This document shows, in pieces, positions 5,706 through 36,368 of a stretch of DNA of 64,000 bases. The stretch is from Ruditapes philippinarum (lineage: Eukaryota). The translations under genes and the position numbers were made by a program. Where the stretch lies: the NCBI RefSeq assembly GCF_026571515.1, contig NW_026863691.1, positions 434,001-498,000 of the forward strand. The letters run 5' to 3'. A model generated the notes under the pieces. It was not told the origin of the DNA and did not search any database. It was given only the letters and a program-made list of their open reading frames with translations. Every line of letters begins with the position of its first letter. Position 1 is the first letter of the stretch.

Positions 5706-8700
5706 TTACTTGAAGTACTGCCTAATCTTTATTGTAGTTCTTAAGACTTTTCTTTGTACCACCTTGCCCAAGCGTCTTGCTTATGCTTTGACCTTGAGCT
5801 CCGTGCCACCGAAACTCAATCGCCACCTCAACTGCTCTTTCTACTTCTAAACCGAATTATCTCCTCCTTCAAAAATGTCTAGCCTCAGGAAAATTTCAAC
5901 CTCCAAGACTTTTCCGATACATTTACATCCAGACTCTGTAGTGTGAACGGGATCTTTTTTATCGGATGAAAAGATCAAAACCGTTGCAGACTTCTGTTTT
6001 TCATCAACGGGATAGTATTCTTTGTCAGAGACCCATTGACAAAGTCTGACTTCTTGACCTTTTGAAACATGCTTCCGAAATACGTTATTTGCCCACATCT
6101 TTCCATCCGATTCAAACGTCTCCTCTCTCTTGTGCAGTTTAGCGTCATATTCCATAACCATAGCGACGCCATATGTGAACCTCATTATTCTTGAAGTTAG
6201 AATCTCCTCATTCTGTCCAAATAGAACAGCCCCGTTTTAATTTCGCAAGTTTTGGTAAACCTGTTGGCGAACGACAGGAAAAAACCCCCGGTTTTTTCAA
6301 TCCCCTTTCGCAAAACTCTGAAACCCACATAGGGTTGGGGTTCGGGAAATCCGCCCCACAAAAATAAGCGAATCAATAGTATACCTTCATGGGTTTGGGA
6401 TTTCCCCTTACCTCACCCATATAGCTCAAAATACCGGGCAAAAGTCTTTTTGGAAAAAAAGCCCCCGGGAAAATTTTATTGATGGAAGAGGGGACTCCAT
6501 TCATGAAAATTGACATTCCCTTTCCCCCCCTTGTTTGCTTTTTAAGATGTCAACAACTTTCTTGCCCTCCTTTTTCTCCCATAGTTCTTTCAGTGTTTGT
6601 GGTAGCTTGATTCTAAAACGTTCGTTTGAATTCGGTTCCGACTGATGTTTTACCTGTAGAAGAACATAGGAAAAAAATTTAGACCATCTTTTCATTATTG
6701 TTGCATTTGTCATGTCATATATGAACAAAATTATTATTTTACATGATCAATACACTCAGATATGTTCTAAACAGAAAATTTACCTCTCTTTTCCTACTCT
6801 CGAAATCCATTTTGAGGTCATACTCGTCCATTGGATTATTTTCAACAAAGTCTTGCATTACGGCCTGTCCAATAATAGTATGTAACAACATCATGAATTT
6901 CTCATCCACCTTCATTCCACCCCATGGACCTCCGCCTGACATATGAACCTGTTTCATTGTCGAATCCTTATTGATTTGTACTGTTGTTATATCAACTGTT
7001 CCACCTATCAAAATAAGAAACAAAACAAGTCTTTTTACTTACATACAAACTAACTAAAATTATGTAGTTATTAACATGTAAACACATTCTAAAAAAGCAC
7101 ATTTATATACCATTTCTAGAAAGAAGAAATCCCTTGAGATCAATGGAAATAATCATAAAAAGGTATGAATTGCGAATTTTGGTTGATAAAGTCGGTTCAT
7201 GAGATAATATCTAATTTTCCTTAGCATCTAACTATTCTACATTTTAGTATTTACTGTAATGTTTTCAAAGGCCAATACTGGAATGCAGTACAGAGTAACA
7301 CCTTTAACAGCTGTCACACGGTACTTAAAACACTATTAATTGATAAATGGTGACCTTAAAAAGTAACCTGCAGTACAATAAGTCTTACCTCCTAAGTCCA
7401 CTACCATGATTGTAGAATCTGGTGCCGCAACATATTTCAGCTTGCCACTATCTCCTTGTATCTCTAATTGATTCACTGGAAGTTGACTGCAATAGATAGC
7501 TGCACATTCTGGTTCCAGAGCTATTGACAGGTTTGTGCCAATAATACCAGCCTGAAATGCGTTAATTGCAAGCACATGATTTATCTTAAAACAATTTTGG
7601 TTTTTATATTGTCATTCTGTTGAAATATAAACAACAATTTTGATGTCACGAATGTCATTGCAATGTTATAGAAATATCAAGCAATTACATAAGATGTGGT
7701 TACCTTTTCTGCCGCCCGTCTCATCACATGTTTAGCCTGGTCATTCCAGATGGCAGGTACTGTTATGACCCATTTTGTTTCGGCTTCCGGGTAGGTGATG
7801 CCACTTTGGTTTAAATGTTCAATCACGTGATCTTTCATGTACTTTATAGATTTCGAGAAAACGTCAATAACAGGTAAATGTTTTCCGTGTGCGGCTTCTA
7901 CAGGTGTTTGGTCATTCACAGTCTAAATAAATAATGTGAAAAAATATTGTGCATTTGATCTGCAATACTCTTTATAGCAAAAGTTCAAAATCATTGTTTT
8001 CTTTGTTAGTTTCCATCAGAACGATAGGACCAAAATCGGTCGAATGTATGGTAGTCATTAATCTTCTTGAATTTTAGTTGGATAATTGGATGTGATACCA
8101 ACAATTTATCAAAGTATTACATTTCCTGCATCAGTAACTTAATTTTACAAGTTATTAATAAAGTGCACGAAAACACACAAGATAAAAACGTGTTGCTTTT
8201 TGTTTCGGGAGTGGTGCTGATCAATTGAAAAAAGTAATTAAGATAATAAAAAGAAAACAATAAAAAACAAACAAAAAAAAAACGAAAATTTTTTACACTA
8301 TTTAATTCGTTATAAATATGTGTTTAATGTCGAATGCTAATATTATAATGTACTACTAATGATATTCCGCGCAAAAACTAAAGGGTTTATTTAGAACTTT
8401 GATTCAGTATGAGTCTACTTATATGTTTCTTTAAAACAGAGAAAGGGGCCTATAGAAAAAGATTAAATATATATTGTCTAAAATAAGCATAAACAATGAT
8501 ATGTGATATAAAATATTTTTGGTTTCGAAATTGAAAAAAAAACTACAAACAAAAAGAAAAAATAACAAGCAGACTTTGTAATATAGGACTTGTACCTCTC
8601 TATGATAAAGCATCATCTTGAAATGCCGAAAGAAGAACCAGTCCTCGGGTTTTTCATTTTCATCATCAGCACCAAGCATGCTGAACTTTAGTTCGGCCTG

Positions 8701-9577
8701 GTACCCAAACTCTGCAATACTTTTGTCCGGCTTCAACAACAAGCATGTTGGTGTCTTGTATGTACAAAATCCGCCAGCAGTCCATTTGGTATTACAATGT
8801 ATTTTCAATCGATCGTCAGTGAAGTCAGAGCGCCATTGTAAAGCATATCCACTTGCATACGTGCCGAAATCAATAGCTATGACAAGACGTGGAACTGCCT
8901 GACCCTTCATGAGAAAAATATGCATTAAGCTTATATGAATACGTTTGCATTCCTAGATCTAAACATTTTATTCCTTTTAGATAATGCATACATATTTATT
9001 ATGTACTGTAATGTATATATAGTATGCCATGGATGGACGGAAGGATGCACCTACAGGATAATAATTATATGGCTTCTGGAACAAAATGTAAATGTGTTTC
9101 TGTTTGTCTGAGAAAAAGAAATGGGATCTTTTTAAATATAATTTAGTTTTCAAGAAATCAACAAATATCATTTCAAGTAATTTATGTATGTAGTGCAACA
9201 ACAGCAACAATGATCTTTTGTCATAGCATAGAAGTCTAACCACCTACGTAACAATAAAAATCGATTATAAACACATTTCTAAGGAGAACCTCTAAATCTA
9301 AGTAAAAAGTATTCTAGACTAATTGTAATTGTAACCACGGATTTATATTACATAAATCCGTGTTGTAACGAGTTACTGCTAAAATGACAAAAAGAAAATC
9401 AAACTAAAGTTAACATCTGTGTAATTATAATGTTTAGTTATATTGTCAGACAAATTATCTAATTTGGATACTTACATGAAAAGCAAAAGCCGGCCCATCA
9501 TCCACAGTATCAACAGTTTCTTCTCGGAATCGTAGATTTATCCTTTGGAGACCAGCAGCAATGCCATCGTCAGCCAT
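5706..9577 (-). CDS. HSPA12: Heat shock 70 kDa protein 12-like (HSPA12 subfamily atypical Hsp70); terminal exon frameshifted (assembly error or pseudogene)
   Basis: Minus-strand exons with GT-AG ends and compatible phases: 9577-9476 (MADDG..AFH), putative microexon 9075-9055 (KPYNYYP), 8904-8596, 7922-7704, 7551-7389, 7004-6784, and 6653 to ~5706-5722. HSPA12 motifs are present: VIAIDFGTYASGYA, KTPTCLLL, FFRHFKMML, WVITVPAIW, IALEPECAAIYC, VVDLGGGTVDIT, SGGGPWGG.KVD, R..RFTYGV, FGGTELKV. The last exon has several indels, so the exact stop is uncertain. Confidence 0.9.
9336..9362. mobile_element. 27-bp palindromic micro-element with 7-bp target-site duplication (copy 1)
   Basis: cacggatttatattacataaatccgtg is flanked on both sides by ttgtaac. 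It is the exact reverse complement of 38347-38373. Confidence 0.75.
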
Positions 9578-9940
9578 ATCAGCTAATTTCTATCAACTTA
9601 AACTGAAAAAAGTTCAGTTGTTAATGTAAAAACCTAGCTTGAAAATCATCATATGACTTGGTTTTCCCGTGATGAAATCATTATCATAAAACGTATTGTA
9701 CAATACGATAAAATATATTTATGGAAAACCCGTTTTATTTTTTGTTTGAATCAGAAACTGAAAGTACAAATGATTAGACTGGTTGGATATTGGTCACGTG
9801 TTTTCCAGTTTGTTTTTTCTTCGATTGTGAAACTACAAACTACATGATTGGGTGAAATTTATCACGTGAGTTCTGTTATTTTTGAATGATCATTCTCTGC
9901 TCCATCTGTGTTTATTTTGGATCATAAAATTATACTTAAT
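9578..9940. promoter_or_regulatory. Putative bidirectional promoter between HSPA12 (-) and Mieap-domain gene 1 (+)
   Basis: There are 363 bp between the divergent ATGs. Motifs: kB-like CGGGAAAACCA (9659-9669, -) and CGGGTTTTCCA (9722-9732, -); ISRE/IRF-E GAAACTGAAAGT (9754-9765); E-boxes GTCACGTG (9793-9800) and TCACGTGA (9862-9869); two inverted CCAAT boxes. Confidence 0.55.
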
Positions 9941-12900
9941 ATGCCGATCGATGCAGGTATGTAATACACGTTCAGTTAAATTAGGTTTAATTAGTATTAT
10001 TGCACTTGTATATTGTTGAATGGCATCATTTTTTAACCCCAAAAAGTACTTTCGATTTCAAAATCGAAAGAAGATATAAGAAGTTGTAGATCTACTATCA
10101 TATTAGATGCTTCCATGCGATAAGTTGTGAAATAAAATATATGATAATAATTTTATTTACTCTATAGATATAAATAGAGATATTACCCAGGTTTGATATC
10201 TAATAAGCAAACTAATGTTGTTGTTTTTGTTTTTTTTCTAAATTATATTTTTTTAGAACTTTTCAACAATATTGACGAGATGATTATATAAACGTTATTA
10301 GGTTTTCCATATATGCTTTATATCTGCATTTTATTACAGAATTTTAATTCATTTCATATAAATTAAATTATTCACATTAAGTGTAATTAGATATATCAGG
10401 GGAGACAAATTCTATCTCAAATGTAAATGTATTTAAGTATACTATTTGAGGACATTTAAATAAGGTAACTTTATTTACAATAGATTTGTCGCGTAAATTA
10501 GTCTGAAATAGATATAGAAAATGGTGTTTGAAATACTCAAACTGTAGGATCTCAAAATATTATTATCATAATTATGATGTTATATTTAGAGACAGGACTG
10601 GTGACCTATATTGTCAACTATTATATATGCAATAAATACTTAAGCAGACGGACAAATACATGTATATAAAATGGTTTTGTTTGCTTAATAAATGTAAGGT
10701 TACTTTTAAGAAAAAAGTTTAACACTTTTTATTAAAATGCTGGCATTAAATTGTTATTATAAAAGAATACGTATACATATATATGATGTGTCCCAAACTT
10801 ATATTTCAAGAACAATCCTTCTTTTTTATAATTTTCTTAGCTTGATATAATGACTGTGCGTACGTGCGCCTCAAATTAAATTTTCAATGTTATTTTTGTC
10901 ATAGATGTTTGTTTATGTTTTCATTTTAAATTGAAAATCATTAAATAAATACAATGTAATAGATGTATTTTTATTCAGACAGTTTTCTGTACTTTTTAGC
11001 ACATGCGATTGTAGCTTCTAGGAATCCTGACATAAGCAGCAGTCCAGATGGATCAGATTCTTCCGAGTAAGTTTTGTTACCTGTCCATTGTACAAAACAA
11101 TAAAGCTAGACTTACTGTTGTTTTATTATTTTTTTTCTTGACGTATTGTCAGATGTAGAACATTTCCAAAACAAAAAAATTGAAAGGAATGTTTGTTGTT
11201 CATTTCTTTCGTTTTGGTTTTACGTTGGTATATCAAACATACCAACCAACCATCATTGCATGTTGCGTTTTTTTGGAACATCTTTCAAAACTGTAAATAA
11301 AGCCCTTGGTGGCGTACCTTATAGACAGGCTATATACATACATAATAAATAAACACGTATATGTGTATCAAGTTTTAATTGGAATGTAATGCATGTAGTC
11401 TACCTTATCCAATCAAACGTGCACCAAATAAATCTGTGTAAAGAGAAATGTTTTAAATATACCCCTTCCCTATGTTTGTTCGTATTTGTCTTTGTGCTAT
11501 TTTCCTCTTGTTAATGTTGATGTTGGTGTTTTTATTGTTTTAAAGAACAATAATGTAAGATTAAAATATTCAAAGAAAATATTACACCTGGATTAGCGGT
11601 ATGAATTCGGCTAATAAACAATATTTTCTTTGTGAATTACTGTCATAGATACATAGGTGCGGCAGAGTAGTGTTGTTGTCAAGGTAAATACTAAATGGAT
11701 AATACGAAAGTGGTACTTAAAATTAAGAAAGTATTTTTTAATGTCTGTTATTCAACTTACACTCAATTATTACTTGGCATTATTTAGAGGTTAATACTTG
11801 GTTGCTGCTCGCCATTATGCGATATTGGCCCGGAGATGTACATAATGGCCTGAGGATTCCTAACATATTGCCTTATATTAAGAAAACTTAAGAATACTCG
11901 TATTATATTGGCAAAAACTTTAGAAAGATGCAACACTTACACAACTTATGTAATGCAAGTCTAATTGAATATTAAAAGGTTATACAGTTGTTAATCTGAA
12001 TTGTTTGTTTTTTATAATGGCCAAAACTTAGCGTCTGTTTTATCTAGTTTCAGTTTATTGCTGTAAACTGATATTCAACCTTGGAAGAAGCTTAATATAT
12101 GTAACAAAGAGATTTGTCATAAGTCTATTGGTTTCGTTGTCTTCACCAATCATGTCATGCTGCAAGAGGTTAGACCATAAATATTTTTTGTTTGATGCAA
12201 AGAGTAAAGCGACTATTTTTACTGAATTCAAAATACATTTGATAAATATCATTGAAAATACTTTCTGTAATTTCATGCTAACATGTACCATCGGGAAAAG
12301 TTATACAATGGCATATGTCTATGAGAAGAAAACACACATTTCGTATATTGATGATATGATAGTTAGACATTTAAACAACAAAAATATGTCAACCCCTTCA
12401 GCATGTAAAAATCACACGTTAAATCGACACGCCGTTGCCATGGACTCCAATTATGTGTCTCTTGATTACCGGTCCAGTATGCTAACTACTACACCACAGC
12501 AGTCATTCCGTTTTCTTCTTAATGTAATTTTCCTATGTATAATTCATGACTTTCTTTCTTTAATTTATATATATACACCTCATATGATTTACTTTTATTT
12601 GTATGTTTCTATATAATGTCAACTCTAATATTACACTTTTGAAATATAGTGCGCCTAAGTGTAAGGCTGCGAAAATTTGTGCTCCTTAAATTTAATTTAT
12701 TGTGCTTTAACGAATAAGTAGATTTTGCTGGAAAATTGCATAGTGTCTTGTTAGTATATTAGAAATATTGTGTGTGAATAATCCTTGGATATTTCATTTC
12801 CTAATTGGATTCTGATATCAAACAATTGGATATATATATAGTTAGAAGACAATATTTTGTAAATATACATGTATGGTGATATAAATTTTAAACCTGGATA

Positions 12901-15900
12901 TAAAATAGACAACAATGTGCTTTATACGATACAATAGAGATCAATTGTTAAAACTAGCAAAACCACCCCGAAGGCAACATGGATTAAGTAATGATACCAT
13001 TCAAACTTTATAGGATTATAATCTTTTTCAATATAGAAATTCTAAAGGTGGACAAAATAATAAAAGAAGAGAATGGGATACAAATCAAGGCATTCACCTG
13101 AATAATCTGAAAACACTTAATCAAATTATACCTACAGTTGAATCAAACAGTAAATTACAGGGGGTCGAACATAAAACCAGGAGAAAGTTGATTAAGGAAA
13201 ATTTGATTCAAGTTAAACCAATTTCTAACACTACAGTCAGTGGTTCAAAATATATGTCAATATGTTTGATAAACTGCAGATCAGTTAAAAATAAAACGTT
13301 AGCCATCTATGACTTTATTATTTCCAATGACCTTGACATGTTGGTTATAACAGAGACCTGGCTTGGGAGTAAAGTAGACAAAGTGTGTCTTAGTGAACTT
13401 GTGCCTGACGGTTATAAAATCTCTCATGTTCCTAGATTAAAGAGAGAAGGTGGTGGTGTTGCCATTCTTCACAAGACCTCAATAAAAATCAAAATTGACT
13501 CGTCAAGTAAAGATGGAGACTTTGAACAATTCGAATTCATGGACTGTATCATTAGTGTTCGTGACTTTTCAACCCGCCTTGTTGTAATATATAGACCTCC
13601 TCCATCCAAAACGAATGGCCTAAGTACTTCAAAATTCTTGAACAATGAGTTTCCTGATTTTCTGTCGAAATATGCTGAAACTGACAAAACCACAGTGTTT
13701 CTAGGAGATACAAACTTTCACATTGATAAACTTGATAATCGTGATGCGCAGAATTTCTTATCCATCCTGAACACATTTGGATTAAAACAGTTAGTCAATG
13801 AACCGACACATGTAGCTGGACACATTTTAGATGTAGTCATAACAAGAGAAAATGAAAATGTAGTATCTGATATTAAAATAACTGATCCTGGATTTAAAAC
13901 TTCAAACGGAAAAGTAACACGTGACCATTTTGCTATCCTAATGAAAGTTAATGTTTCGAAACCACCACCTATTCGTAAAACAGTCACATACAGAAAATCT
14001 CGTGATATAAACATTGAAGATTTCAAAGCAGATATTAGATCATCTGAACTTTTTGGTCCTAAACCAGACAGCATGGCAGAAGCATCAGAGAAATATCACA
14101 CTGTCCTTTCATCTTTGTTAGACAAACATGCACCTGAGAAAACAAAAACAATTGTTCTCAGACCCCAATGCCCGTGGTTCAATCAAGAAATACATGACGA
14201 GAAACACATTAAACGTAAACTTGAAAGAAAATGGCAGGAATCAAAATTAACTGTAGATCATGAAATATACAGAAGTCAGTGCTTAGTTGTAAATGATGTA
14301 ATTGAAAGATCTCGTGAAACATATTACAAAGACAAAATAAAATCGTGTGGTAATGATCAAAAACAAATTTTCAAAGTAACAAATCATCTCCTCGGAAACA
14401 AACCTGAAGTTAAGCTCCCATCACACACTTCTGCTAAAGAACTAGCTCAAGATTTTAGTGATTTCTTTGAAAACAAAATTGAAAAAATCAGATCTGACAT
14501 AGCATCTAAAAATGAATGTAATATAACAAATGAATCTAATTCAACTCAAATACAAAAGCCTAAAGAAACATTCAGTGAATTTGAAGTTATTACAGAAGAG
14601 CAAGTTCTTAAGCTCATATCAAAGTCATCTACTAAATCATGTGAACTAGATCCGATACCGACTTGGCTCCTAAAAGAATGCAAACTTGAAGTATCACCAT
14701 ATCTAACGCACATGTTCAACTTATCATTTTACACCGTCGACGTACCTCCACGCAATAAGACTTTGATAATCAGACCACTATTAAAGAAAGACAATTTGGA
14801 TCAAGAAATTATGAAAAACTTTAGACCAGTTGCTAATGAAACATATGACTCAAAACTTCTAGAATCTGCGGCTGACTGTCAGTTTGATATGTTTCTCAAC
14901 ACTAACAATCTACATGAACCAAATCAATCTGCATACAGGAAATTTCATTCCACAGAAACTGCACTTATCAAAGTGCAAAATGACATTCTCCAATCTCTTG
15001 ACAAAGGCGAAGTTACAATATTAGTAATGCTCGATTTATCTGCTGCCTTTGACACGATTGACCACAACACTCTTCTTAATCGACTCGAATGTGACTTTGG
15101 TTTTACTGGAAAAGTGCTCGCTTGGTGTAGATCTTATCTCAGTGGTCGCTATCAGACTGTTTGTATTGATGGAGAACTATCTGACCCTGTGCATATGACA
15201 TACAGTGTCCCTCAGGGCTCTGTATTAGGACCAAAATTTTACATACTTTTCACAAAACCTGTTGGCGAAATTTGTCGAAAACATGGTCTGCAATGTCACT
15301 TCTATGCTGACGATTCTCAAATATACATTTCTTTCAAACCGTTGGACAACACCAAAACTGAACTTGTACTTGATTCTGTCTCAAACTGCTTAAAAGAAAT
15401 AACATTCTGGATGAACAGCAACATTCTCAAACTGAATTCAGACAAAACAGAACTTATAGTCTTTTCGTCGGGTAGCAATACAGACTCAGTGAAAAATATA
15501 ACTGTCAATGTGGACCAAGTTGAAATCAAACAGTCATCAAGTGTAAGGAATTTGGGTGCATTCCTTGATTCAAGGGTTAATATGGAACATCATGTTAGCT
15601 CCGTGTGCAGATCTTCGTATGCCCAAATAAGTAAGATAGGACGTATTCGAAAATATATCAACGAAGAAGCTACAAAAACACTCGTTAACTCTCTCGTGAC
15701 ATCAAGACTGGATTATTGCAATGCTCTTCTATATGGTATACCTCAACAAACCATGAAAAAACTTCAACTTGTTCAAAATACTTCAGCCCGTGTGATTAAA
15801 CGTACATCTAGGAAAGATCATATTACACCAGTGATGAAAGATCTTCATTGGCTGCCAATCGAATATAGAGTGAATTACAAGATCTTATTACATACTTTCA

Positions 15901-18900
15901 AGTCACTGAAACAACAATCTCCATCATATATGCAGGAAATGATTCAAGTTTATTCCACTTCCCGAAATCTGCGCTCTTCAAATGCACCTGTACGATTAGT
16001 GCAACCAAAACCTAAACTGAAATTTGGTGAAAGGAGTTTTTCGGCATCAGCTCCTAAGCTATGGAATTCACTACCAAGTCATCTAAAAAACTGTAACACA
16101 GTAGAAAGTTTCAAAAAACATCTTAAAACACACTACTTCAATTTAGCTTATGAAAAATAATCAGTGACTGTTATGAATGAATTTTATAAACAGTGAATAC
16201 GAAGTATCTGTTATTTGAATATTAGTTTTATTAAAAAGTTTTATTTTTTTTTTTTTAAACAAACAATTTTTTAAATCAATTTAGTATTTCTATTGTTTTA
16301 TAATGATGATTTAGCAAGATCTTATCTATTATTATATATTGAAGACAATTTTAATGTATGACAATAATATTGTAAAGTGAGTTTTAAGGATCTTTAAGTT
16401 ATATTGTATTAATATGTAAAAATAATTCCATAATTTATACTTTTAATTAGTTAATGCAAAATATTTTTAATGTTCATAATCCTGTTCATTTATATTGTTT
16501 TAGACATATATGATTGATGTAAAGCGCCTTTGAACATTTTAATGAAAAGGGCGCTATATAAATGTGGTATTTATTATTTATTATTATATTATTATTGAAA
16601 ATGAATAAAAAGAAAAACGGTATTCTTTGGTAACATGCATCTATCACCTTGCACGTTCATGTTAGCTTTCTGTTTCTGTTTTATTAAATTGAACTTTGTA
16701 ATGCATTTGAAATATTTGGAAAATGCAATTTGTAAACTAGAAGAACCTGAAAAATATATAATGACTGAAAGCATTTTTAATGTAACATTCTGTAACACCT
16801 ATAACATTGTTAAATTAAAGATATTTTAACACAAGCCCTTCCCTTGCACCAAGTAATAAGTTAATACTTTACGTTTATATTATAACATCCTTCAAATTCG
16901 TCATCAACTATGCAAAATTATTTGTAGTTCATGAAACGTATATTGCATAGTTTATTAAATATACTGGGAACACATTTATATCACGTTGATTTTTTAAAAA
17001 AAAATATAAAGTCTTACTTTTACAAATTATGATATCGATCCAGGAAATGCTCATAACATTGAATAGTATTAAATTAAGATGAAGTCATTCAGCCTTTCAA
17101 ACGTACTCTAATTCTATTTTTTTTAGAGAAAATCATGAGCCAAAAGCCGAGGCATTATGTGGATCTTGCTATAAATACAAGGTGAGTTAATAGCTTCATG
17201 TTTTGTTATCGTTGTTGTTTATTTTTTCTTTTCTTTTTTAAAGTGTTCTATCATAATGAGGCGTTAGATCCGTTTTTTTACATCATTGATTTTTGTGAAG
17301 GTTGTTTTCATATTTTGTGAAAAAGGTAATACGTACTTGTTTGTGTTTCAGAAAACTATTGAAAGTTTGCAGTTGGAAAATGACAACATCCTGAAAGAAA
17401 ATGAAAGACTTAAAAAGCAAAACCGTGATTTGAGAAACCAAAATGCTGAAATAATGGAAAGGTAACCTTATTTTGTGGATACGTCTTAATCTTAAAATTA
17501 AGAATTCATTTCTTTGTTTAGAGTTTCAATTAAAGATTTGATAGAACGTTCAATATGACACTTTCATAAAGAAGTTTCCCAAGTAAATATTCAATAGTTC
17601 AACAGTTTTAAAACATTTTAATTGTAAGCCTATTTTTTCTGATGCAAACAAAGATCTGAGGAACTAACGTGCTCAATGGCAAGTGTTTTGGAGACCTCGG
17701 GAGCTCTTGAAAACGTCAACGATGAATACTCTAATACCAAATTAGCAAAGTTGTTTGAAAAGCTTTATGACAATCAATGGGTAAAACTATCTGAATGGTT
17801 GGAAGAGAACAATTCCGATCTATCAGAATTAGAGAGAGTAAAAGCTCTTTCGACTCTGATGAAGGTATTTCATACAACTTTTAATACAATAAGTATATAA
17901 TTGTTCTTGCTTTTAAAATCAAATGTTAGAAAAAAAAGGTTTTCTTAGAAAAAAAATTACCAACAATGGATATTTATGTAAAATAAAACTCTTTGAAGAT
18001 TTTTTTTATACTGCTAAATTTTCATTCATTTTATGCAAAACAATCATCAGTTCATCTCATAATTTCGCTATTTGAGCATTTTAAATAGTTCACACCTGAA
18101 TGTTAGTTAATTTTTCGGTTGCACAAAAATGAATTATCTGGGACTGCCCAACATTATATATCGTAAGAAAAGGAACTTGCACATGCTGCCATTTTGTTTT
18201 GCTAATCATTGTGAATGGGGGGTATATTTTGTCTGTAATAAATAATGTAAATAAGTCTCAGATTTATGTTATTTTCTGGATTAGCACATACCTGATCATA
18301 TTTAATTCTGCAGGATGCCTATGAAGAATGTTTGAAACTAGCGGACGATCAAATACGAAGGTTTCTTTTTCTGGAAAGTGGTGAAGAGCTTCCATCGCCA
18401 AACGATGTAGGTTGTCTTTTTCCTCACTCACTCCTGGACTTCAGATTGTCTCTGTATTACAAGAAAACACCATATACTTCGTTATCAATATCGTTTCCAT
18501 TTCAACTTTGTTTAAAATAAAATTATCTACACCTTGTCCTTGTTAAAATCCTTTACAAAACTCTTCTTCTTTCCTGTCAGTGACCCAGTTTCTATGGCCA
18601 ATAAGTTCAAGTAACTTTTATGTCCATGATGTCGCAAATGTGTGTGGTTTTGTCTTCAAAAAATGAGATTATGTTCCGTCCAAATTCAATTCTGTTTTCA
18701 AAATCAGCTGGAATACCTGGTGTTTTTTTTATCTCCTATTGAATTTCATTTTTTAGTAAGATCAATTAACTAGAACATCTTTTTTGAATATAGATATTCA
18801 GGGTTATTATTATGGAAGGTAGGGTTTCTGGCGCATTTCAGAGAACACGTAAATTTAGCCCGCAGTCGTTGCTCTAGTTCCAATTGATTTATGACAATAG

Positions 18901-22119: not shown

Positions 22120-22450
22120 CTTAAACGATGCGTCCCTTGTAAATCAAACGTATCTGATTCTTTAAATAGAGAAAACAAGAATTCCTTAAGAAAGTCCATA
22201 ACGACAAAATTGAAAATTTTGCAGGCTCGGTTTGATTGGGCCTGTTCATGGACGGTACTGGAAAGTGCAAGATACCGTCTACGCCACCAGGCACCGACTT
22301 AAGCAGAATTCAACATTTAAACATGGTGATGGTGAAATTTTGAATTTAGAAACATTCGCAAGTTTGTTCATACGGCGCTTATCATGGAACCCTTTAATTG
22401 GACTCATGAGTGCCATTCCATGAAAAGCGGCGCATGGCCCTTTTCATACA
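22120..22450. repeat. Interspersed repeat homologous to 1550-2760
   Basis: Shares direct and inverted matches with the 1550-2760 region, as listed for that feature. Confidence 0.6.
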
Positions 22451-23616
22451 TTTGGGACAATCGATATAAATATACCATATTATACATGTACTATTAAACA
22501 AAGATTAGTTGACACTTTTCTACTAAGCTGATATGCATATATTACTAATTTACCAATATAACAAACATACTGCATATTTAAACATTCTTTTGAAATTGAA
22601 ACGTATTTAGACTATGTCCAAGCTGCTTTTACTAGATTTCGGACTTCCTCCCATAATTTATTTATAGAAACTGATAGGCCTAGAGAACAGCGAAATAACA
22701 GAGTGAAAAGCACTTTCTCCTTGTGTGTACCCACTATCGAAATCTTTAAACCATACTACTTCCATTGGCCGCCGACTATAAATAAACTAGATAGTCTTTT
22801 GTTGAAAACTGTATGTGCCAAACAATCAATACAATACAATCTCAATACAAAAAGTAAATAACTTAATAATAAGTTATTTCCTATCAAAAATTCTATTAAA
22901 TAAACTTATAGAATCAATGCAAGCACATTGTGTATCTAAACTCGTAAGAGGAGAGGATGAAGTCGAAGTGAGCTGGAGAAGGAAAGTGCGCGGGAATTGG
23001 AAGAAAACCAATGTAAAACTCTCTCAAATCTCTTTCATACAATTATGTTGTACACACGATTGGACATACAAAAACAGTTCACAAAATTGCACGACATACA
23101 TAGTGAAATTGTTGCGGCCGTTTCCGTGAATTTCCGCTAATAAGCGTACGTTACAGAACCATCCGAAACAATACAATAGCAGACGATAACAGACGCCACG
23201 GAGACAAACGACAATCGACCTATGCGCGGACATTAAGGATATTTTTCCCACGACTAAATGACGAACAGTGCACGGCAAAATGAACAATTAACATAATGAA
23301 TAAATCGACCTAAGATTGATGAACAATTATGACCTGTGAGCTCTTCTTTATCATAATGACCCACTAACTTTGTTAATATACTGACAATGTTTGCAATATT
23401 AAACTTATCTGAACAATCTTTTTATTATATTTTTATGCTAACATAAGCGTTTTCAGATCATCGGTAATCCAAACCGATTTCGAAAGTACATTCAAAACGA
23501 AAGTAGAATTCCTGTATTAATGAAGATCATGTGACCGTATTGAGATGCATCATAGGGATAATAACGATACTTTAAATAATTTCATCGAAACCAACTTTTC
23601 ACTATATCCTTTACAT

Positions 23617-26600
23617 ATGGCTGACAAAGGTAATGCATTTATTAATTGATTTAGGTAAACTACATTAAATAGTGTCATCGGGCGTTTAATCATGTCGTTT
23701 AAGCTTATTCCTAAAAATAATGTTAAAATGTAGGTGTAAATGTATACATATCAATGTCGATTGTAATAGCAAGTGTTACATATTACCAATTTAACTGTTG
23801 AAATACGTGTTCGTCTGTAGATGCACGCATGACAGAATTCTGTGAATAGTCGTTCATTTTGTTAAGAATAGAGTTTAGTGGTAATGTATTTTATCTTTGA
23901 TCTAAAGTCAATGTCAAGCTGCTTTCACTGAGTCCAACAGTAAATGAAATGGATCTAGTTTCGATTTTAAAATGGTTGGGGTTGAGTTACGTCTCTTAGT
24001 ATGTCCAATAACAAGGAAACGATGGTTGCTTATGATATTTTGAGAGTCATTTCCAGTCCACCAAGATTAAGAATATTGAAGTGTAACTTTTGTAGGTCTT
24101 GTTTTGGTAAATTGTCCATACACGACCAGGCTGTTCTTTTGAAAATCAGTTTATGTTCCAATTCAGTTGAAATTCAAATTAAGTGAACGATAGCAATGAT
24201 AACTTGGCAGTGCTTAAATTCCAAAATGCAAAAAAGTGTGGTAAAATGTTGTTGCCATTTATTTCTACATTATAACGGTTAAGCGTAATTTTGCTGTTAA
24301 CTGTTATAATTTATTACATATACTACTTGTTTTTTGTTGTTGTTTTGTTTGTTTGTTTGTTTGTTTGTTGTTGTTGTTTTTTTTTATCTTTTGATCTGTC
24401 TTTTTTTCATCTTAATTGAATGAAGTTGTTATTATTCTATATCAAACTAAATATTATAACCTTTAAAGTCATAAAATTATTTAGTGGTGTGGAACATCCA
24501 TCTTTTATTATACTTAAGTTAAGAAATAATATATCTAGCTGTTATGAATGTCAAGATGTCATTAAATTGCATACTTTCCTCTCTTCCTCTCTTTTTCTTC
24601 AATTCTTCATCATTGTCATGTACTTAGTAGGCTAATTTCTTAAAACCAATTAACTGTTATATTATATTTAACTCTGCTCTTTGTAGTCAACGTATGAAAC
24701 ATAATCTCTGCATTTCAACATTTTCGGAATCTGAAAGATATTTCAAAATTATGCATTATTCTGTTGAATATTTCTTTTAATGCTGAATTCAGTCACAGTT
24801 CCATGGAAAAAGGTGATAGTATCCAATGTCACTTATTAATGGTTCAATCCAAATGAACGTGTACCATTGTAATTTTTCAGTGTTATAATGTTGTTTTTTT
24901 TAACATTTAATTGGATATATTTTCATTTAAGAGCATAAAGGTATGGAAGAATCTACAGACAAAGTTGAAGGTAAGGATGAAGATAAAGCTGAAGTGACCG
25001 TTGATGTAACGAACAATGAGGTAAAATTCAAGAACGCTCCTATGGGAACTGATGTGTAAGTTAATGGTACAGTTATTTTGAACTTATTTATATCTAATAG
25101 TAAATGCTATACGAATTTCAGGTCTCAAATACATGAATTGTACAATATTTCGTGTATATGAATTGCAGTTTTCTTACGTCAATTAAGATTCTGATCAAAC
25201 TGATTATAATATACTTATTAAAGTACGTTTGTGAGCCAGAACAGAACTTTTTGCCTTGTTGCCTAGGCTCTTTGATGTTTTTCCTTGTAGGTTTTCATTT
25301 TAATCTTTATAATACTAATTTGACTTTTTTTCAATAAATTAGAATTAATGTACCTTGGAAATTAACATAATTATCACAAAAACATATTCATAGACTTCTG
25401 TTTTTATTTGGGGTGATAATCATTAGTTTGATTTTGCTTACTGTTACTGACACTTACTTTTTAGTGATACAGGGAAAGAAGTGTGTCACAACTGTGCTAG
25501 GTCACAGGTTAGTTAAAAGTTACATTGTCTAAAGACATTATGTCTTAATAGAAATAATTGTGTCATTCTGTATATTACTAGTATTATTTATCTTCTATAA
25601 TAATGAGTTCCATGGCAAAAATTGCAAATCTGAAAGAATAGGTGAAGATAAAATAAAATGCTCTTTATAAATTGACCTGCCATTCATATCGTTTTCAATA
25701 TTCAATACAACTATTTCCAGCTGTTCACAATTTCACATGTACTATATTGGTTATAATAAAATCAGTATTCATGAAATGATGAATATAGTCTATGATTCAA
25801 CTCATTTTAGGCTGTTGAGAAAAATAATTATAATCAACATGAATATACATTACCTATTTACTTCAGGAAAGCATGGCAAGAGTTATGAACGAGACCTTAG
25901 ATGAATCGCGCAAGCTTGAAAGCAAAATAAAAGAATTAACTGCTCAGAAGAAACTTGCAGAAGAAAAATATATTCAGATACAGCAAATGTTAGTACAATA
26001 CCCGTAATGTTTGAAGTAAATAACATTATAACAGGCATTTAAAAAAAAAAAAGATTAAGATTTCGTTTTTCTAGACTGTCAAGAAATAAGTAAAACAAGT
26101 TCATGTGTCTAAAAGTCTTTATCTTAAATGCATTTTTGATTAATTAAATTTGTTTAATATTATCCATGTTCAATATGACTCCACTACCTTAACTACATGT
26201 GCATGTTAATACCAGCTTGTTAACAATCCACACATTATATATAAATGGAATAAATGACATATGCTATCATGACATATTTCATATCAAATGACTTCTTCCA
26301 GCATGGAATTTAATTAGTAATTACTTTGTCTTCGAAAACACCATGAATTTGATTGACCACATTATGTAACATAAGTATATCTGATTATTTTTAACCGTTG
26401 ATACAGTTCGCTACTGTAAAGGTAGTCCTATTGAAACTTTTTAGCAAATCCGTATGCAACACGGATTATACAGTACTGTACTTTCCTGAAGGTTACCTCG
26501 GAAACAAGAAACGGATAACTATATTACTGTTAAAATACGGTTTTAGCCATGGTCAGGCGATAAACCGCTAGCCCAAAAACGAAAACAACTTTTTGTATGG

Positions 26601-29600
26601 ATTTAGTAGCATATCGACTTATAAATTCGCCTAAATAGTTAGTTGTTGAGTCTCAAGAACTAATTAATGTTCAATGTAATTCATCAAGTTAAAAGTATAA
26701 CTTGAATCATACTTGTAATTTATAGTTTATATTGTTGGTTCCATGCGTTCCAAGATTAATGCAAACAAATGTTTTGAGAGTATGTTATATTCGATCTCAA
26801 AATTGAGTATTAATGCATGCAAAGATTGAGATATCCTTTTATTTGTTTCGTTACACATGTAAGAACTTAATATGAGTATCCTATTTCTTTCCAAAGGTCT
26901 GATGAAATTACAGCAAGTATGGCGGATGTGTTCAACAATAAATTAGAGCTAGAAAATCTTAATGATAAATTTTCTAACACTAAAGTGGCAAAGCGTTTTG
27001 AAAGTTTGTACAACAGCGACAATAAATGGCCGTCACTAACAGAATGGTTATTGGAAACTATCGAGGGAATCGATGAACTAAGCATGATCAAACACTTGTC
27101 ATCACTTATGAAAGTAAAATATAAATTTATTCCCAATTTTTTATATTCAGTATGAAAATCAAGTTCTTCTCCTTAATTCAAAATTAAAATGATTCATTCG
27201 TTTAATATACACATTTCTGAGTTTGACCCGTTATAAATGTAATTGTATATTGTTAAAAGATTTTGAGGGTCCCATCCATGTTCTATGAAACAAAATTGAC
27301 ATGATCTACAATTAAAAAAATATATTATACGTATTTTTTGGTCATGGGTCACATCTCAGTAATGATCATTTTAAGTTTTTAAATTTGTTTTTAGTTTGAA
27401 AAAGAGTAGAACAAATTAATCTTTGGAATGTCTTGACGTTAAAACATGGTCTTGCTACTGAATATATGAGTGAACATTTATAGGCCCCAAACACTGTACA
27501 TTCATACAGACTATAAGTACTATAATACAAGGTCAAGTGTACGTGAGTGCTATAATTTACTCACAGTCAATGGTTGTGGTGAAAAATCATTTGCGTAATT
27601 ATAATGGATGTGTCCTGTGGAGCAAACAACCATCTTCTATTATGAATGAAACTAAGTTATATAATATCTAACAATTTAAAGGTCGTTTTGGACTGTGATA
27701 TTTATTCCCTGCATCTGTGTCAAAACCATCAGTAATTGTTAAAGGGCCAAAATGGAAATAAGAGATTTAGTGCTATCCTTAGCATGGGTTTAATTTCTAC
27801 ATGGTTATTGTTTAAACGTATATTAGACGTGTTTTACCATGTTATTGCATTATTATGCTGGAATAATTTTATCTATATTTTCTTTTGTTTGATATTACTA
27901 TGAAGTAAAAACAACTTTATTGTTCTAATGTGTGTCATTTTGCAGAAAGCCTATGAAACATGTATCAAAATTTCTGACAATGAAATAAGAGTTTTTCTTG
28001 CTCTTGAAGATGACGAACCACTTCCGTCATCGCGAGAGGTATGTATCACCTACTTTCCTAAATTTGCAATGTTAACTTGCCTATTGTCATTTCTTTTATC
28101 ATTTCTTTTTTTATTTAATTTTAATGTTTAGTTAATTGCAAACATAGGACAAAGTCCGTAGAGCATTTGTGAATTAGACAGTATGCCTTGATTTCTTAGT
28201 TTTATCATCCATGTTTAACAGGGAGGTAGGATGTTTCATTTCCAATTTCTAGTTCTATATTATTATAGTTCGAACTATGTCACAATTGGTAAGAGTGAAT
28301 CATGTTGATGAACCTTTTCCAAAGAAACAAATTATGTTTGTAAGATATATTGCTATAATAAGATTTTTGTTACATGAATGAAGTTTTTAAAACTTATTAT
28401 TTGCAAAACAATAAGTGGCTAAACACAGAGATGGTGAAAAATGAATCTATTTATTTTCATTAGAATCATTTACTTTAAGCATTGTTTATGGTTTCCAAAA
28501 ATATCTTATTCCTAACATGACCTGAATATATTTGTCATTACATATATTTATGTTTTAGAACCCTCTTCTGTATAAAGTTAAAAGAAACCATGGACGTACA
28601 GAAAAACGAAGAAATGCTATCAAAAAGGTAGTGCATTTTTTTTTGTAACATTACTACATGTATTTATAATTATTAGTATTATTTATCCTGTGTTAGATAA
28701 AAAGCATATGCCATAGACCGTGGAGCATTTATGGCAAAAAATCGAAAGTGAAGTAATTTAATAGTTACGTTTTAATTTTCCATATTCGTATTGTTTCCTT
28801 CTTTTCAGAGTGTTTGGGAAATTGTATCAAAAGAAGACAGCATGTGTGTATTACTCCACGAAAAACAGAGTGAAACAATGGAGGAGGGCGAAGCCAAACT
28901 TAAAGATTTCTTTAACGAATTCATAGATATCTGCTGGCTATCAGCAATTTCTCAACCGAAACTCATCCTGAATTTTAATGTCATCGACGAACTGTACGAA
29001 GGAAGTATACGTGACCGATTTACGCAATACGCTTGCCAAGATACCGTAAAAGACATGTCAAGGGTCAAAAACACTATAATCGAGGTTGTGTGGCCAAGCG
29101 TTGAGCTAGAAGATGGGTCAGGAATTCATACTAAAGGCGATGTTATTGTAGTCGAAGAGGGGACAGATGAGATGAATACGAAAGGGAAAGAAACAAATCA
29201 GAATGAGCAAGCAAAGGAAATGAGTCAGAAAAATATAGATAAGAAGGGAACAAGTGAAAAACGAGCAATTCGAGATAAGACAAATGAGAAAGGAGCTAGT
29301 GGGGCAAAAGTGGAGGGAACATGTCAGAAACAAGCTAATGAACTCGGTACAAATGGGGAGGAAACTTGTGAGCAGGTAACTAATGAAGGTGAGGCAATTG
29401 GGGAAGAAACATGCAAGAAGGAAACTAGTGAGGAGGTTACAGATGAGGAGGGAACGTCTGTGAAAGGACCTAACGAAGATGGGGAAAATGGTGAAAATAT
29501 ATGCGAGAAAGGAACTATTGAAGATGGGGCAAATAGGGAAATAACATGCGGGAATGGAATTTGTGAGAAGGGTACAAAAAAAGATGGAACTTGTGAGAAA

Positions 29601-29651
29601 GAAACTAATGACGAAGGGACAAATGGGAAGGCAACTTGTGAAAGGAACTAG
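23617..29651 (+). CDS. Mieap-domain protein, tandem paralog 2, 507 aa, with an acidic repetitive C-terminal tail
   Basis: Exons 23617-23629, 24932-25055, 25465-25507, 25867-25988, 26897-27113, 27946-28038, 28559-28627 and 28809-29651 total 1524 nt in one open frame. Intron phases (1,2,0,2,0,0,0) match the paralogs. Motifs CHNC, NTKVAKRFESLY, ICWLSAISQP, EVVWPSVEL..KGDV. Confidence 0.85.
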
Positions 29652-29752
29652 TGATGAGGTGAACGTACAAGAAAGGAGTTAATAAAGAGGGTTAAGATTG
29701 GGGACATATATTGTCGAACTGTTATGTATGATTTAAAGATTTGGTTTTTTAT

Positions 29753-29823
29753 GTTCGTTCGTTTGTTTGTTTGTTTGTTTGTTCGTTCGTTCGTTCGTTC
29801 GTTCGTTCGTTCGTTCGTTTGTT
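29753..29823. repeat. Compound (TTTG)n/(TTCG)n microsatellite
   Basis: Directly visible in the 3' UTR region of paralog 2. Confidence 0.95.
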
Positions 29824-32007: not shown

Positions 32008-35000
32008 ATGTTATGCGCAGCAGGTAAGCTGTTAATCTATAAAACCTTCTTTTAAAGACATATTAGTATTACAGTTTTGCTTACAAATAAACGAAAGAGG
32101 AAAAAACGTAAAGGGAAAAAATTTATACAATACACTGTTATTCGCTCTGTTTATCTTTCAAAGGATCGTTCAGAAAATTATTATATAAATGTTTTAGAAA
32201 CTATAGATAGTTTTTAAACTGATTAACCAAAGAAATACTAACGGGATACCTTTTAAAGAAAGAAATACCGGTATATACCTATGCATATGTATGCAAATTA
32301 ATAAACGACAATTACATGCTTAAATAATTTTTACAATTGACTATGTCTTGACTATAATGTACATTGTATTTGTTACACTAAAATGTTGATATCTTTTGTG
32401 ATTCCATATCAAGCGTTGGACAAGCAAATACATTCCGGTCAGCCATATGCAGTTAAACCCATGAAGGAATTGTAAGTGATTTTATACATGTATATATATT
32501 TAGAACGTTATTTACACATGTACATTTTTCTGCAATCACTGAAAGTAAAGTCAAGCTTAATATGTTAAAATGTTAGTTAAAACTTAGCACATAATTATTT
32601 TCATGAAGCAAATCTAATAATTGAGTTTACAAAATGAAATTTATGGAAATGGATATGAGTTGATCTAAGCGACAGAAGTATGTTACATGGTCTAATTCTT
32701 GAACGAAACAATAGAATACATAGAATTAACCATCATCAATGTTATGTTAACCACACACTTGATAGAGATCTTAAATGTAGACAATGGCTATATAACATGT
32801 ACTCGTAGGTAGTTTTGGTTTGATCTTCCTCGTTCATATTTCTCGTGTTACTCAGGAGGACAATAATTTTGAAACGTGTCCTTAATATTGTTAGACGAAA
32901 CTATTAATTTCTTAAAGTGGATAATTCTTTATCAAGTAACAACGGTTATTAGACGAAACTATTAATTTCTTAAAGTGGATAATTCTTTATCAAGTAACAA
33001 CGGGTTAAACATTTTTGTCTAGTGATCTTCCTCTATACTTATGGATAAAAACAAAAATGCGTTTGTTTTCACTTTAAGAGACAAGCAAAATAAAGAGCGA
33101 GAATGCAAAGGCTGTGCCAACCTAAAGGTAATATATCTTATTTCTTTTTCTTTTTTTTTAAATATTTTTTTTACTTAAATCTAAATTCTGAATGTCAATT
33201 GGATAACAAATATTTCCGGGGTTTTGTTCTTTTTAATCTGTCGTTTATTTCCCTTACTTCCTTAACTATTCTTTTTGTTCTTTTTCTTGATATTTCGCAA
33301 TAATTATCTTCCTACCATGATTAAAATCTTTGCTCTTCTCTGATATATACAAAAAAATTCTTAATATATTTACAAAAACATTATCAACTGTTGTCAAAAT
33401 TATCATAATTTACGTACAATACTTCTCATTACAAAACTTGTATTTAATATATAATTATCAGAAATCACTGGAGTCGATGGATATAGATCAGAATGCGCTG
33501 GTACAAACCACCAAAAAATTGGGAGAGGAAATTAGACAATGGGAAAGAAAGTATACCACCCTGGAGAAACGGTAATCATCAGTATATAAGACCTGAATTG
33601 ACTATATATTTCAAAAGTTTGGCTGTTGTTTGATTGACCAACAGTTGATATTAAAATGCCTAAAATATGAAAAGACTTCCCACTCTTTTTATTAATGGAA
33701 CGTTACGTGTGATGGATATTTACAGAAATTTCCTTGGGCCACGTGAGGCTTTTAGCGTTCATGCGAAATAAATTATAAAAATTTAAAGTACTTCTTGCAA
33801 CATGTAAACTTATTTTGATTGTAAGCTATTCACTGGATTGGCATAACTTCACTTTAATAAATCCAGTCAATAAAAACAGAAACATAAAAATGTAGATTAT
33901 ATCGACTTCTATGAGCTGAGATGGCTCATTATAAATATCTTTTGCATTTTGAAATATTTGTTCGTCGATACATTTTTGACAAATAACAAAGATATTATTT
34001 CTTAAGTATTGATCATTTCGTTGACTTATATAACACTATAACACTGCATTATGCTCAAATGAAATATCCTGGATGATTAGAAAAATTGAAATCCATTAAT
34101 GAGAAGTAACGTCGTTTAGGTGATCCGATTTTGAAAACCGCGTGTTGGTATAGGCCCAGCTGGAAATACCCATACTTTACGTTCTTGTCAAAAATTACCT
34201 CCAATTCCGTTACACCACAGGTCCAATGACATTACAGCAAAAATGGCAGGTGTGTTAGAAGTGAGTGGTAATTTAGAGAATATAAACGACCAGTACTCAA
34301 ATACTAAACTAGCCAAGAGATTTGAGGACTTGTATGGCAACCAATGGGCGGATCTTTCAGAATGGCTTCAAGAAAACATAGAACATGTCACTGAACTTGA
34401 CAGGATTAAAACACTCACCTGTCTAATGAAGGTAAATAGATAGATAAATTCTAGCATTGACTTAATAATTATGTTGCAGTATAAAATTGAAACAGAAAAA
34501 GAATGTTATTTAATTTTTATTGTTTTTGTGGGTTACAGAAAAAAATCACCATATTTTAAATCCGAAGTCCGTAAGCCTTACTGTAATAATTAACTTATCT
34601 TATATTGCTATCCTTGGTGCATACTGTTTTGCCACTTCAGTTTGTCAGTCCGTCGCATTATAGTCATGGCTTTTTCTCAAAAGCTACGTATCCTTAAAAA
34701 AGAGCATCACTGCCAAGATGGGTTACATGGAAGGGGTTTCTATTCTTTCACTTTTGACATTAAATAATAACCTTTCCCATGATCATTTCTATTTAGTTCC
34801 AAATGTTATTTTATTGTAAGAAAAATATAATATAAATTTATTTTGTGTCAAGTGAAGTGAACATTGTATAATTTCAGCTTTCATATTATGAATGTGTTAG
34901 TACTGCAGACTCTCAGATGCGAAAGTTTTTATTTTTAGACAAAAATGATATGATCCCATTACCAGTAGAGGTAAAGATTTTCTAACAAAATTCATGTTAT

Positions 35001-36368
35001 CAAATGGTTGCAAATAAGTAAACTTCACTAAAATGTATTAAGTAACAAAAACAATGCCAAATTGATTTTTCACTTTGTTCTGGACGTAATGTTTCTGAAT
35101 ATTGACTCTTTGAGGTATCCTGTCTTAGTTTTACTTGAAATATCACAGTTCGAAGAGACTTCAAACACGTTCTTTCAATGCAAATATTTCTTTCAAAATA
35201 ATGCATTTGAATAAAACATTCCATGTTTTCTCAGGACCCAGAGTTATTTAGGTTACGAAGAAGGAATGGTCAAGGTGTATATACAAGGACGAGAGTCAAA
35301 CAGGTATGCACTATGAGGACTTTATTCATGTTATTACATACATGTATGGTTTCGAATGGTAGACATATTATGGTATCTTTCAGATTTATGCAATATTCTA
35401 TGCTATGTTCTACAGAAAACTACGCCGCACCACGCTAAACAATACTGCATTGCGCTGCTTTACTACACTCTAAAATACTCAGTCTGTACATTGACTTTAA
35501 TTGACACGGACTTTAAGTGTCAAATTAAGTCCGTTGTCTTACAAGACTATAGTATTTACTTTATTATATAACATACATGTATATGAATGCATACTATAGA
35601 AATTTTTACAAAACAAGGAAAAAAACGTCAAAGCAACGTAAAATGTTTGAATTCCCATTCGATTAAATATCAATATATTTGTAACATAAGAAAAATGTTG
35701 TCAGTTTTTTGTCGTTTATTTCCCTTACAATAACATAACAAGTACATCTAAAACTGTCTATATTTCAGACAATTGCTAAGAAAACACTTAATACCGCACA
35801 TGCAAATATATTTATGGAGACCGATGATAAGGATGAGGTCGAAAAGAAACTTGTAGAGTTCTTTGAAGAGTTTATTGACATATGCTGGCTAATGACAATA
35901 TCTCACCCAAGACTGCTGCTCAATTTTGATGTTGTAGGCAAGCCATATAGTGGTACAATAAAAGAACGATTCAAGCAGTATTCGTGTCAGGATATTGTAA
36001 CAGACAGAAGTCTTTCATGCGGGGATATACTTGAGGTTGTGTGGCCAAGTGTGGAGCTAGAAAACGAAGAAGGTGTATGTGCTAAAGGCGACGTGATAAC
36101 TGTTCAAAAAGGAAGAGACAACACTAAAGCTCACAGTGACAAAAGACGAAAATCAACTAGAAAAATAAAGGATTGTGAAAGTTTTAAGGAAGATACAATA
36201 ACTGTACAAAAAGAAAAGACTATTATTGAAGGTTTTAACGCCAAAAAAAATATTACATCTGTTGGCCATGAAGGGGGAGAAAATTGTGAAACTGTCCACG
36301 GCGAAAGAAATATTATAGCTGTTCAAGAAGGGGATGTAGACGAATTTGAAGAAATTTCACTAACATAA
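32008..36368 (+). CDS. Mieap-domain protein, tandem paralog 3, 401 aa
   Basis: Exons 32008-32023, 32414-32471, 33079-33127, 33462-33571, 34221-34431, 34878-34970, 35235-35303 and 35769-36368 total 1206 nt in one open frame. Exons 4-7 have the same sizes as in paralog 1 (110/211/93/69). Motifs CKGC, NTKLAKRFEDLYGNQW, ICWLMTISHP, EVVWPSVEL..KGDV. AATAAA at ~36710. Confidence 0.85.
32891..33003. repeat. Tandem duplication, 58-bp period, in intron 2 of paralog 3
   Basis: ttagacgaaactattaatttcttaaagtggataattctttatcaagtaacaacgg starts at both 32891 and 32949. Confidence 0.95.

Follow-up and report, generated by a model that had tools for sequence, protein, structure and literature searches.

Head-to-head pairing of HSPA12-family and MIEAP-domain genes in the Manila clam, and a predicted GrpE-type fold of the MIEAP domain

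A 64 kb stretch of the Ruditapes philippinarum (Manila clam) genome, contig C12178:434001-498000 of the 1.41-Gb assembly, was analysed; it is called the window below, and positions are counted from its first base unless a contig is named. The window has a G+C content of ~31% and its genes are split by introns. It carries one gene assigned to the HSPA12 family of atypical Hsp70s on the minus strand, followed by three tandem genes for MIEAP-domain proteins on the plus strand, with the HSPA12 gene and MIEAP paralogue 1 lying head-to-head. Genes of the two families adjoin one another in this genome more often than chance would give, mostly in divergent orientation, and the predicted fold of the MIEAP domain finds its best match among solved structures in GrpE and GrpEL1. 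Mieap/SPATA18 (PF16026) is a p53-induced mitochondrial quality-control protein of vertebrates. GrpE, Mge1 and GrpEL1-2 (Pfam PF01025) are the nucleotide-exchange factors of DnaK and mitochondrial Hsp70, and we know of no co-chaperone for any HSPA12 protein. A first-pass annotation had suggested that the locus may be an operon-like pairing of an HSPA12 gene with divergent GrpE-fold partners. The gene layout that it described is confirmed, and its interpretation overall is partly supported.

The HSPA12-MIEAP locus and its common 5' region

Transcript evidence supports the first exons carrying the HSPA12 ATG at 9577 and the paralogue 1 ATG at 9941, and the intergenic gap between the two start codons (9578-9940) is therefore exactly 363 bp, as first annotated. 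Transcripts cover the first exon of either gene, and no more than ~150 bp separates their 5' ends: HSPA12 transcripts extend on the minus strand to at least 9718, and the first exon of paralogue 1 ends at 9865 or 9956 on the plus strand. The arrangement is that of a bidirectional pair, with opposite strands and 5' ends within ~1 kb, and the gap holds the 5' untranslated regions of both genes together with the bidirectional promoter region. The proposal of one promoter region common to HSPA12 and paralogue 1 is borne out, in that the transcript-supported 5' ends lie within a few hundred bases. The description of the pair as operon-like was overstated and has been dropped in favour of a bidirectional pair, because the two genes are transcribed separately from opposite strands and share no common transcript. 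As to promoter conservation, no DNA similarity was found between the window pair and the neighbouring HSPA12-MIEAP pair.

Transcript loose ends and a pattern search showed that the paralogue 1 donors after 9865 and 9956 are both spliced to the exon at 11000-11066. Use of the upstream donor (9865/9866) would exclude the ATG at 9941 from the transcript, and the coding start may vary between paralogue 1 isoforms.

The HSPA12 gene (5847-9718, minus strand) was delimited by exon-wise matches to a hidden Markov model (HMM), by alignment to intronless relatives and to an intact neighbour copy, and by spliced transcripts and reads. Its exons run from at least 9718 to 9476 (with the ATG at 9577), 8904-8596, 7922-7703, 7550 to ~7387, 7006-6779 and 6648-5850, the last being followed by a stop codon. 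The HMM was built from 40 database entries bearing the name 'heat shock 70 kDa protein 12A/B-like', and its matches fall in exon order along the window at 8434-8952, 7680-7922, 7339-7611, 6742-7038 and 5850-6236. Public transcript-like contigs and RNA reads give canonical splice joints at 9475/8905, 8595/7923, 7702/7551 and 6778/6649, and the first intron has a GTAAGT donor after 9476 and its acceptor before 8904. Since the transcript splice joints reveal an upstream coding exon, the start codon is placed in that exon, at 9577. Within this first intron, a stretch of ~30 bp (9332-9362) was seen from which the reads and contigs of all four runs continue on either side into unrelated DNA; this stretch is most likely a short dispersed repeat.

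Single HSPA12 exons gave no match to Pfam or to PDB sequences. Because nothing in the PDB sequences was matched by single exons, the identity of the gene was reached through its intronless relatives. A search of the genome with exon 1 returned at least 150 related exons (336 candidates), some of them within intronless open reading frames (ORFs). Two such ORFs, L004 and L005, have a nucleotide-binding domain that scores above the Pfam HSP70 cut-off, and they match the Hsc70/DnaK ATPase domains in the PDB, and L005 is 100% identical to an NCBI 'heat shock 70 kDa protein 12A-like' entry. Pfam HSP70 was also found in P0268 and P0065, both relatives of the window gene, and P0268 matches Hsc70 nucleotide-binding domains in the PDB. 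Judged by its kinship with HSPA12-named proteins and by the Hsp70-type nucleotide-binding domain, the minus-strand gene of the window belongs to the HSPA12 family. Like HSPA12A/B, the window gene and its relatives have this Hsp70-type domain, and the relatives are named HSPA12A/B-like by NCBI; two points set the window copy apart from them, namely an additional acidic coding exon at its 5' end and a last exon whose frame is broken in the assembly. The first exon of the neighbouring paralogue is acidic in a similar way.

Three-frame reading of the last exon showed that the assembled sequence switches frame three times within ~6237-6528 (minus strand). In L001, the paralogue lying 23 kb upstream, the frame is continuous across the region matching 6237-6528, and transcript contigs over this region either do not align there or carry indels, namely an added G after 6380 and a loss of two bases at 6393. 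The frame breaks could be an assembly error, an allele or the mark of a decaying copy. Near the 3' end of the coding region (5874-5910), transcript contigs from two runs are shorter than the assembly by 9 bases in all, and the window HSPA12 stops ~25 residues before its neighbour copy does.

The two further paralogues said to follow paralogue 1 in tandem are present, and both correspond to database proteins that map exon by exon onto the window. Paralogue 1 (9941-19879, plus strand) was mapped from transcript ends, tblastn, HMM matches and the sequence itself, and the exons placed, besides small middle ones, are 9941-9956, 11000-11066, 17352-17463, 17649-17867, 18305-18421 and ~19499-19879. 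Of these, 17352-17463 encodes the coiled coil, 17649-17867, 18305-18421 and 19499-19879 are the MIEAP exons, and the last of them carries the GrpE-like head; the 328-aa length first given for this paralogue is provisional. Paralogue 2 (23545-29651, plus strand; eight exons, placed by exon-wise mapping and HMM) is P0064, LOC132723033, a protein of 531 aa where 507 aa had been predicted. Paralogue 3 (32398-36368, plus strand; seven exons, placed by exon-wise mapping of the database protein) is P0001, LOC132723034. This protein was retrieved by phmmer with the last exon of paralogue 3, its residues 218-401 are 100% identical to the translation of 35814-36368, and its length of 401 aa agrees with the first annotation, as does the C-terminal motif then quoted, which is present in the sequence. 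The Mieap-domain identity holds as well: P0001 matches Pfam MIEAP (PF16026) over residues 105-313 at 35.4 bits (cut-off 27). P0064 scores 17.6 bits, below the cut-off, and all three paralogues match the MIEAP family HMM exon by exon.

The heads of the three paralogues are 50-55% identical in amino acid sequence and dS is saturated; by these measures the three tandem genes are old. The sole computable pair gave a dN/dS of 0.17, which indicates purifying selection for that pair. The regions after the head differ. Paralogue 2 (29180-29651) has a tail of ~160 residues rich in E, G, T and N and with regularly spaced C, the tail of paralogue 1 is short, and that of paralogue 3 is different from that of paralogue 2.

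Predicted structure of the MIEAP domain

A model of P0001 was made with AlphaFold2 using 32 homologues. The mean pLDDT was 80, with residues 35-320 above 90. The model consists of a disordered N-terminus (1-34), one long helix (35-93), six helices (105-245), a beta domain (251-318) and a disordered tail, so the layout first proposed, of a coiled coil, a helical region and a C-terminal beta segment, is recovered in the model.

Comparison of such models with GrpE had been suggested as a check on the partnership idea, and a fold match was found by Foldseek, VIA and ESM Atlas, so that the idea of a GrpE fold survived a check that might have overturned it. With the whole P0001 chain, Foldseek placed GrpE chains at ranks 1-4, 6 and 8 of the PDB matches, at weak E-values (0.05 and above). 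VIA gave the GrpE chain 1dkg_B at rank 1 with 151 of 151 residues aligned, and in this full-chain match helix 35-93 of P0001 aligns with the GrpE stalk. The helix and beta head of paralogue 3 (35814-36131, plus strand) were also modelled from the last exon alone with a 63-row alignment (pLDDT 93; model m22f963845bbd). GrpE or GrpEL1 accounted for all of the top 10 Foldseek matches of this head; TM reached 0.60, with an rmsd of 3.4 and a probability of 0.99, and the next family stood at 0.35. The predicted head is thus a beta-rich C-terminal domain of GrpE fold, and the helix that precedes it aligns too (83-89 residues, rmsd 2.6-2.9). An independent ESMFold model of P0001, searched through ESM Atlas, reached a GrpE cluster whose TM to the head was 0.53/0.69, along with MIEAP clusters and plant GIL1_IRKI_C/DUF641 clusters.

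Because two predictors and three search routes agree, the fold resemblance is reproducible. In terms of predicted fold the likeness to GrpE is genuine and modest in score, and it covers the last helix and the head plus a common order of parts. The order of parts in P0001 equals that listed for GrpE-like proteins in a 2025 review (PMC12987570), which mentions neither Mieap nor HSPA12. Like GrpE, the clam MIEAP proteins have a disordered N-terminus, a long stalk helix, a helical domain and a beta head in the same order. They differ in having a helical domain of ~140 residues and six helices, far larger than that of GrpE, as well as long disordered tails, and in being apparently cytosolic or membrane-associated animal proteins of a family of 150 or more genes. 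The fold by itself does not establish function. A complex prediction with residues 55-629 of P0268 (an HSPA12 protein described below) and the MIEAP head encoded next to its gene, run without alignments or controls, returned a score of 0.00 and 'no answer', and counts neither way.

Two other systems bear on the domain. With vertebrate Mieap/SPATA18 the clam proteins share a PF16026 domain behind N-terminal coiled coils, but the clam paralogues are divergent (35 bits, with paralogue 2 below the Pfam cut-off), and the published role of Mieap, in condensates and cardiolipin metabolism, does not involve an Hsp70. The nearest named ESM Atlas neighbour of the whole MIEAP domain is the C-terminal domain of the plant GIL1/IRK-interacting protein (PF24994, with DUF641), at TM 0.63. 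These plant proteins also combine a coiled coil with a C-terminal domain, but they are plant proteins that gave no sequence match in Pfam scans, and the neighbour is treated as a lead only. For residues 100-320 of P0001, unnamed ciliate clusters were seen in ESM Atlas beside GIL1/IRKI among the structural neighbours. The predicted structures hint at a wider eukaryotic superfamily around the MIEAP domain.

Linkage of the two families across the genome

Both families are large in bivalves. Regan et al. (2021; PMC8382680) reported a Mieap orthogroup with 53 genes per bivalve versus 0.6 in other molluscs, and an Hsp70 orthogroup with 68 genes per bivalve versus 4.4 in other molluscs; both were expanded at the base of the bivalves, and neither linkage nor fold was mentioned. 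The clam genome yielded at least 149 matches to MIEAP exons and at least 150 to HSPA12 exon 1, mostly in tandem arrays. An HSPA12 exon 1 lies within 30 kb of a MIEAP exon on C12178 (twice), C2299, C6085, C14781, C14196, C9370 and C4942. Counted by exon-1 matches, nine have a MIEAP exon within 30 kb compared with 1.0 expected under uniform placement (P about 1e-6), and at the level of arrays there are 7-8 HSPA12-MIEAP junctions compared with 0.46 expected. The orientation is divergent in 8 of 11 junctions (P about 1e-3). The linked HSPA12 copies are scattered through the family, having 34-60% identity to exon 1 of the window gene. Adjacency of the two families beyond chance, on which the first-pass annotation had made its interpretation depend, is thus found in this genome. 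The linkage is genuine and above chance, but only some of the copies take part in it.

The pair on contig C6085 (L002, L026; 124-144 kb) is the most informative of these loci. Its HSPA12 gene encodes P0268 (XP_060596197.1, 629 aa; 100% identity over four of five aligned exon segments). The genome has a single copy of P0268: the second match has 56% identity and contains stops, and no other exceeds 36%. Over the last exon P0268 shares 97% identity with a Mercenaria protein, 87% with one from Dreissena and 73-77% with proteins of scallop, oyster, gastropods and Octopus. Since it is single-copy and strongly conserved across molluscs, P0268 is a conserved HSPA12A orthologue and not a product of the expansion. 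A MIEAP gene begins less than 3 kb from the P0268 ATG on the opposite strand, head-to-head with it, and only one Pfam MIEAP match anywhere in the genome scores higher than the last exon of this gene (71.9 bits). Because the conserved single-copy orthologue also adjoins a MIEAP gene head-to-head, these data suggest that the HSPA12-MIEAP pairing is ancestral and that the arrays have grown from it; the C6085 pair may be the ancestral pair.

Contig C12178 itself is mirror-like over ~353-470 kb, with five MIEAP genes (minus strand), an HSPA12 gene (plus strand) at 410.5 kb, ~30 kb of intervening DNA, the HSPA12 gene of the window (minus strand) at 442.9 kb and the three MIEAP genes (plus strand). 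The layout has the appearance of an old duplication, in inverted orientation, of the entire HSPA12-MIEAP unit. The two HSPA12 exon-1 sequences of C12178 are 60% identical. At L003 (contig C2299, 18-28 kb) the 3' end of one plus-strand HSPA12 gene and the 5' end of another flank a minus-strand MIEAP gene. No protein fusing HSPA12 with MIEAP was present among the database matches listed, which are a limited sample.

Outside the HSPA12-MIEAP module, the window contains an open LINE-type retrotransposon ORF of 990 aa (13188-16160, plus strand) with endonuclease and reverse transcriptase domains (Pfam PF03372, PF00078). The long intron of paralogue 1 contains this ORF in sense orientation.

Interpretation of the pairing

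The model that we favour starts from a recurrent clam unit, of which the window contains one, in which an HSPA12 gene and a MIEAP array are transcribed in opposite directions from a common promoter region of a few hundred bases. The MIEAP proteins would be GrpE-fold partners of HSPA12-type Hsp70s, acting as co-chaperones or adaptors; the MIEAP head would dock on the HSPA12 nucleotide-binding domain, and the two would be co-expressed under stress. Taken whole, the model is tentative, being possible but less probable than not. As for its parts, physical binding of MIEAP to HSPA12 proteins could well occur, though we stop short of calling it an even matter, and a true nucleotide-exchange activity of MIEAP proteins on HSPA12 is rather doubtful. 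In favour of the model stand the predicted fold, the enriched and mostly divergent linkage, the head-to-head MIEAP neighbour of the single-copy, slowly evolving HSPA12A orthologue, the transcription of both first exons from close 5' ends, the age of the paralogues with purifying selection in the one pair that gave a value, and the joint expansion of the families at the base of the bivalves.

A number of results weigh against this model. No sequence similarity to GrpE was detected in Pfam scans to E 10 of P0001, P0064 and 63 members of the MIEAP alignment, and profile searches of PDB sequences with two alignments returned no GrpE chain, only coiled coils and one chance match. The helical domain of GrpE, a four-helix bundle in the dimer, is short, whereas P0001 has six helices at 105-245, of which only the last (223-245) aligns. 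The GrpE resemblance that had been drawn by eye in the first-pass annotation therefore stands for the predicted fold, where GrpE/GrpEL1 is the best PDB match by two aligners and is found again in ESM Atlas, and falls for the sequence and for the size of the helical domain. In the window itself, the HSPA12 copy is frame-broken in the assembly. In the 10 kb upstream of the 20 HSPA12 copies closest to that of the window, a MIEAP exon was seen just once, and there on the same strand as the HSPA12 gene; across the genome many MIEAP arrays are without HSPA12 and most copies of both families are unlinked. All the linked loci may descend from one ancestral junction, and if they come from one block the junctions are not independent. 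Lastly, the C-terminal structured region of mammalian Mieap has been proposed to bind phosphatidic acid/cardiolipin in work that also points to condensates and does not mention Hsp70 (PMC10845071).

This last point is also the starting point of the alternative that survives best, in which the two families are co-regulated stress or immune genes whose products make no contact: MIEAP proteins would be lipid- or ligand-binding coiled-coil scaffolds, HSPA12 would act separately, and the promoter would couple expression only. It fits the assignment of lipid binding to the Mieap C-terminal structured region, and both families are stress-related and jointly expanded, with most copies unlinked. A literature search found no paper linking Mieap with HSPA12; the only papers containing both Mieap or SPATA18 and GrpE looked, by title and abstract, unrelated, and a GrpE-like fold for the MIEAP domain was not found in the papers searched. 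What it leaves to be explained is a coincidence, namely that the one known role of the best-matching solved fold is to bind Hsp70 and that the adjoining gene belongs to the Hsp70 family, as well as the recurrence of the junction with a conserved divergent orientation. We regard this alternative as unlikely, though still to be taken seriously.

A neutral history would require only that two huge tandem families met once and that block duplication spread the junction, with no functional meaning. With at least 150 detectable copies per family and tandem arrays dominating both, ~0.5 chance junctions are expected, so that one is plausible, and the single upstream MIEAP exon among the 20 nearest HSPA12 relatives agrees with such a history. 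The linked HSPA12 copies, however, are dispersed in the family (34-60% identity) and include the conserved single-copy orthologue, the orientation is kept in 8 of 11 junctions, and the paralogues are old, with the one available dN/dS value (0.17) indicating purifying selection. On balance a purely neutral origin seems distinctly unlikely. That the GrpE resemblance is a functionally meaningless coincidence of a small simple fold, whether by convergence or as a modelling artefact, is improbable, given that GrpE entries are all top-ranked with a gap to the next fold, that the preceding helix aligns too, that two prediction methods and three search routes agree, and that the domain order is the same along the whole chain.

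Returning to the partnership model, a bolder form of it would make the MIEAP domain of bivalves, of vertebrate Mieap/SPATA18 and perhaps of plant GIL1/IRKI an ancient offshoot of GrpE that supplies the missing co-chaperones of HSPA12, the two families having co-evolved in a joint expansion and been kept together by head-to-head pairs. We offer this as a speculation that is quite unlikely as it stands.

To our knowledge, HSPA12 is among the last Hsp70 paralogues without a known mechanism or partner. A 2026 review gives the function of HSPA12 as unknown and leaves its expansion to tens of copies in bivalves unexplained (PMC13580251), and the pairing with MIEAP genes offers a testable candidate partner. 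The GrpE-type fold and the recurrent pairing merge the question of HSPA12 with that of the Mieap C-terminal domain into a single one, that is, whether the MIEAP head binds the HSPA12 nucleotide-binding domain and changes its cycle. If the partnership model is true, the clam MIEAP proteins would represent a new class of animal Hsp70 co-chaperone, vertebrate Mieap would be open to a new reading, and there would be a reason why both families grew jointly in bivalves.

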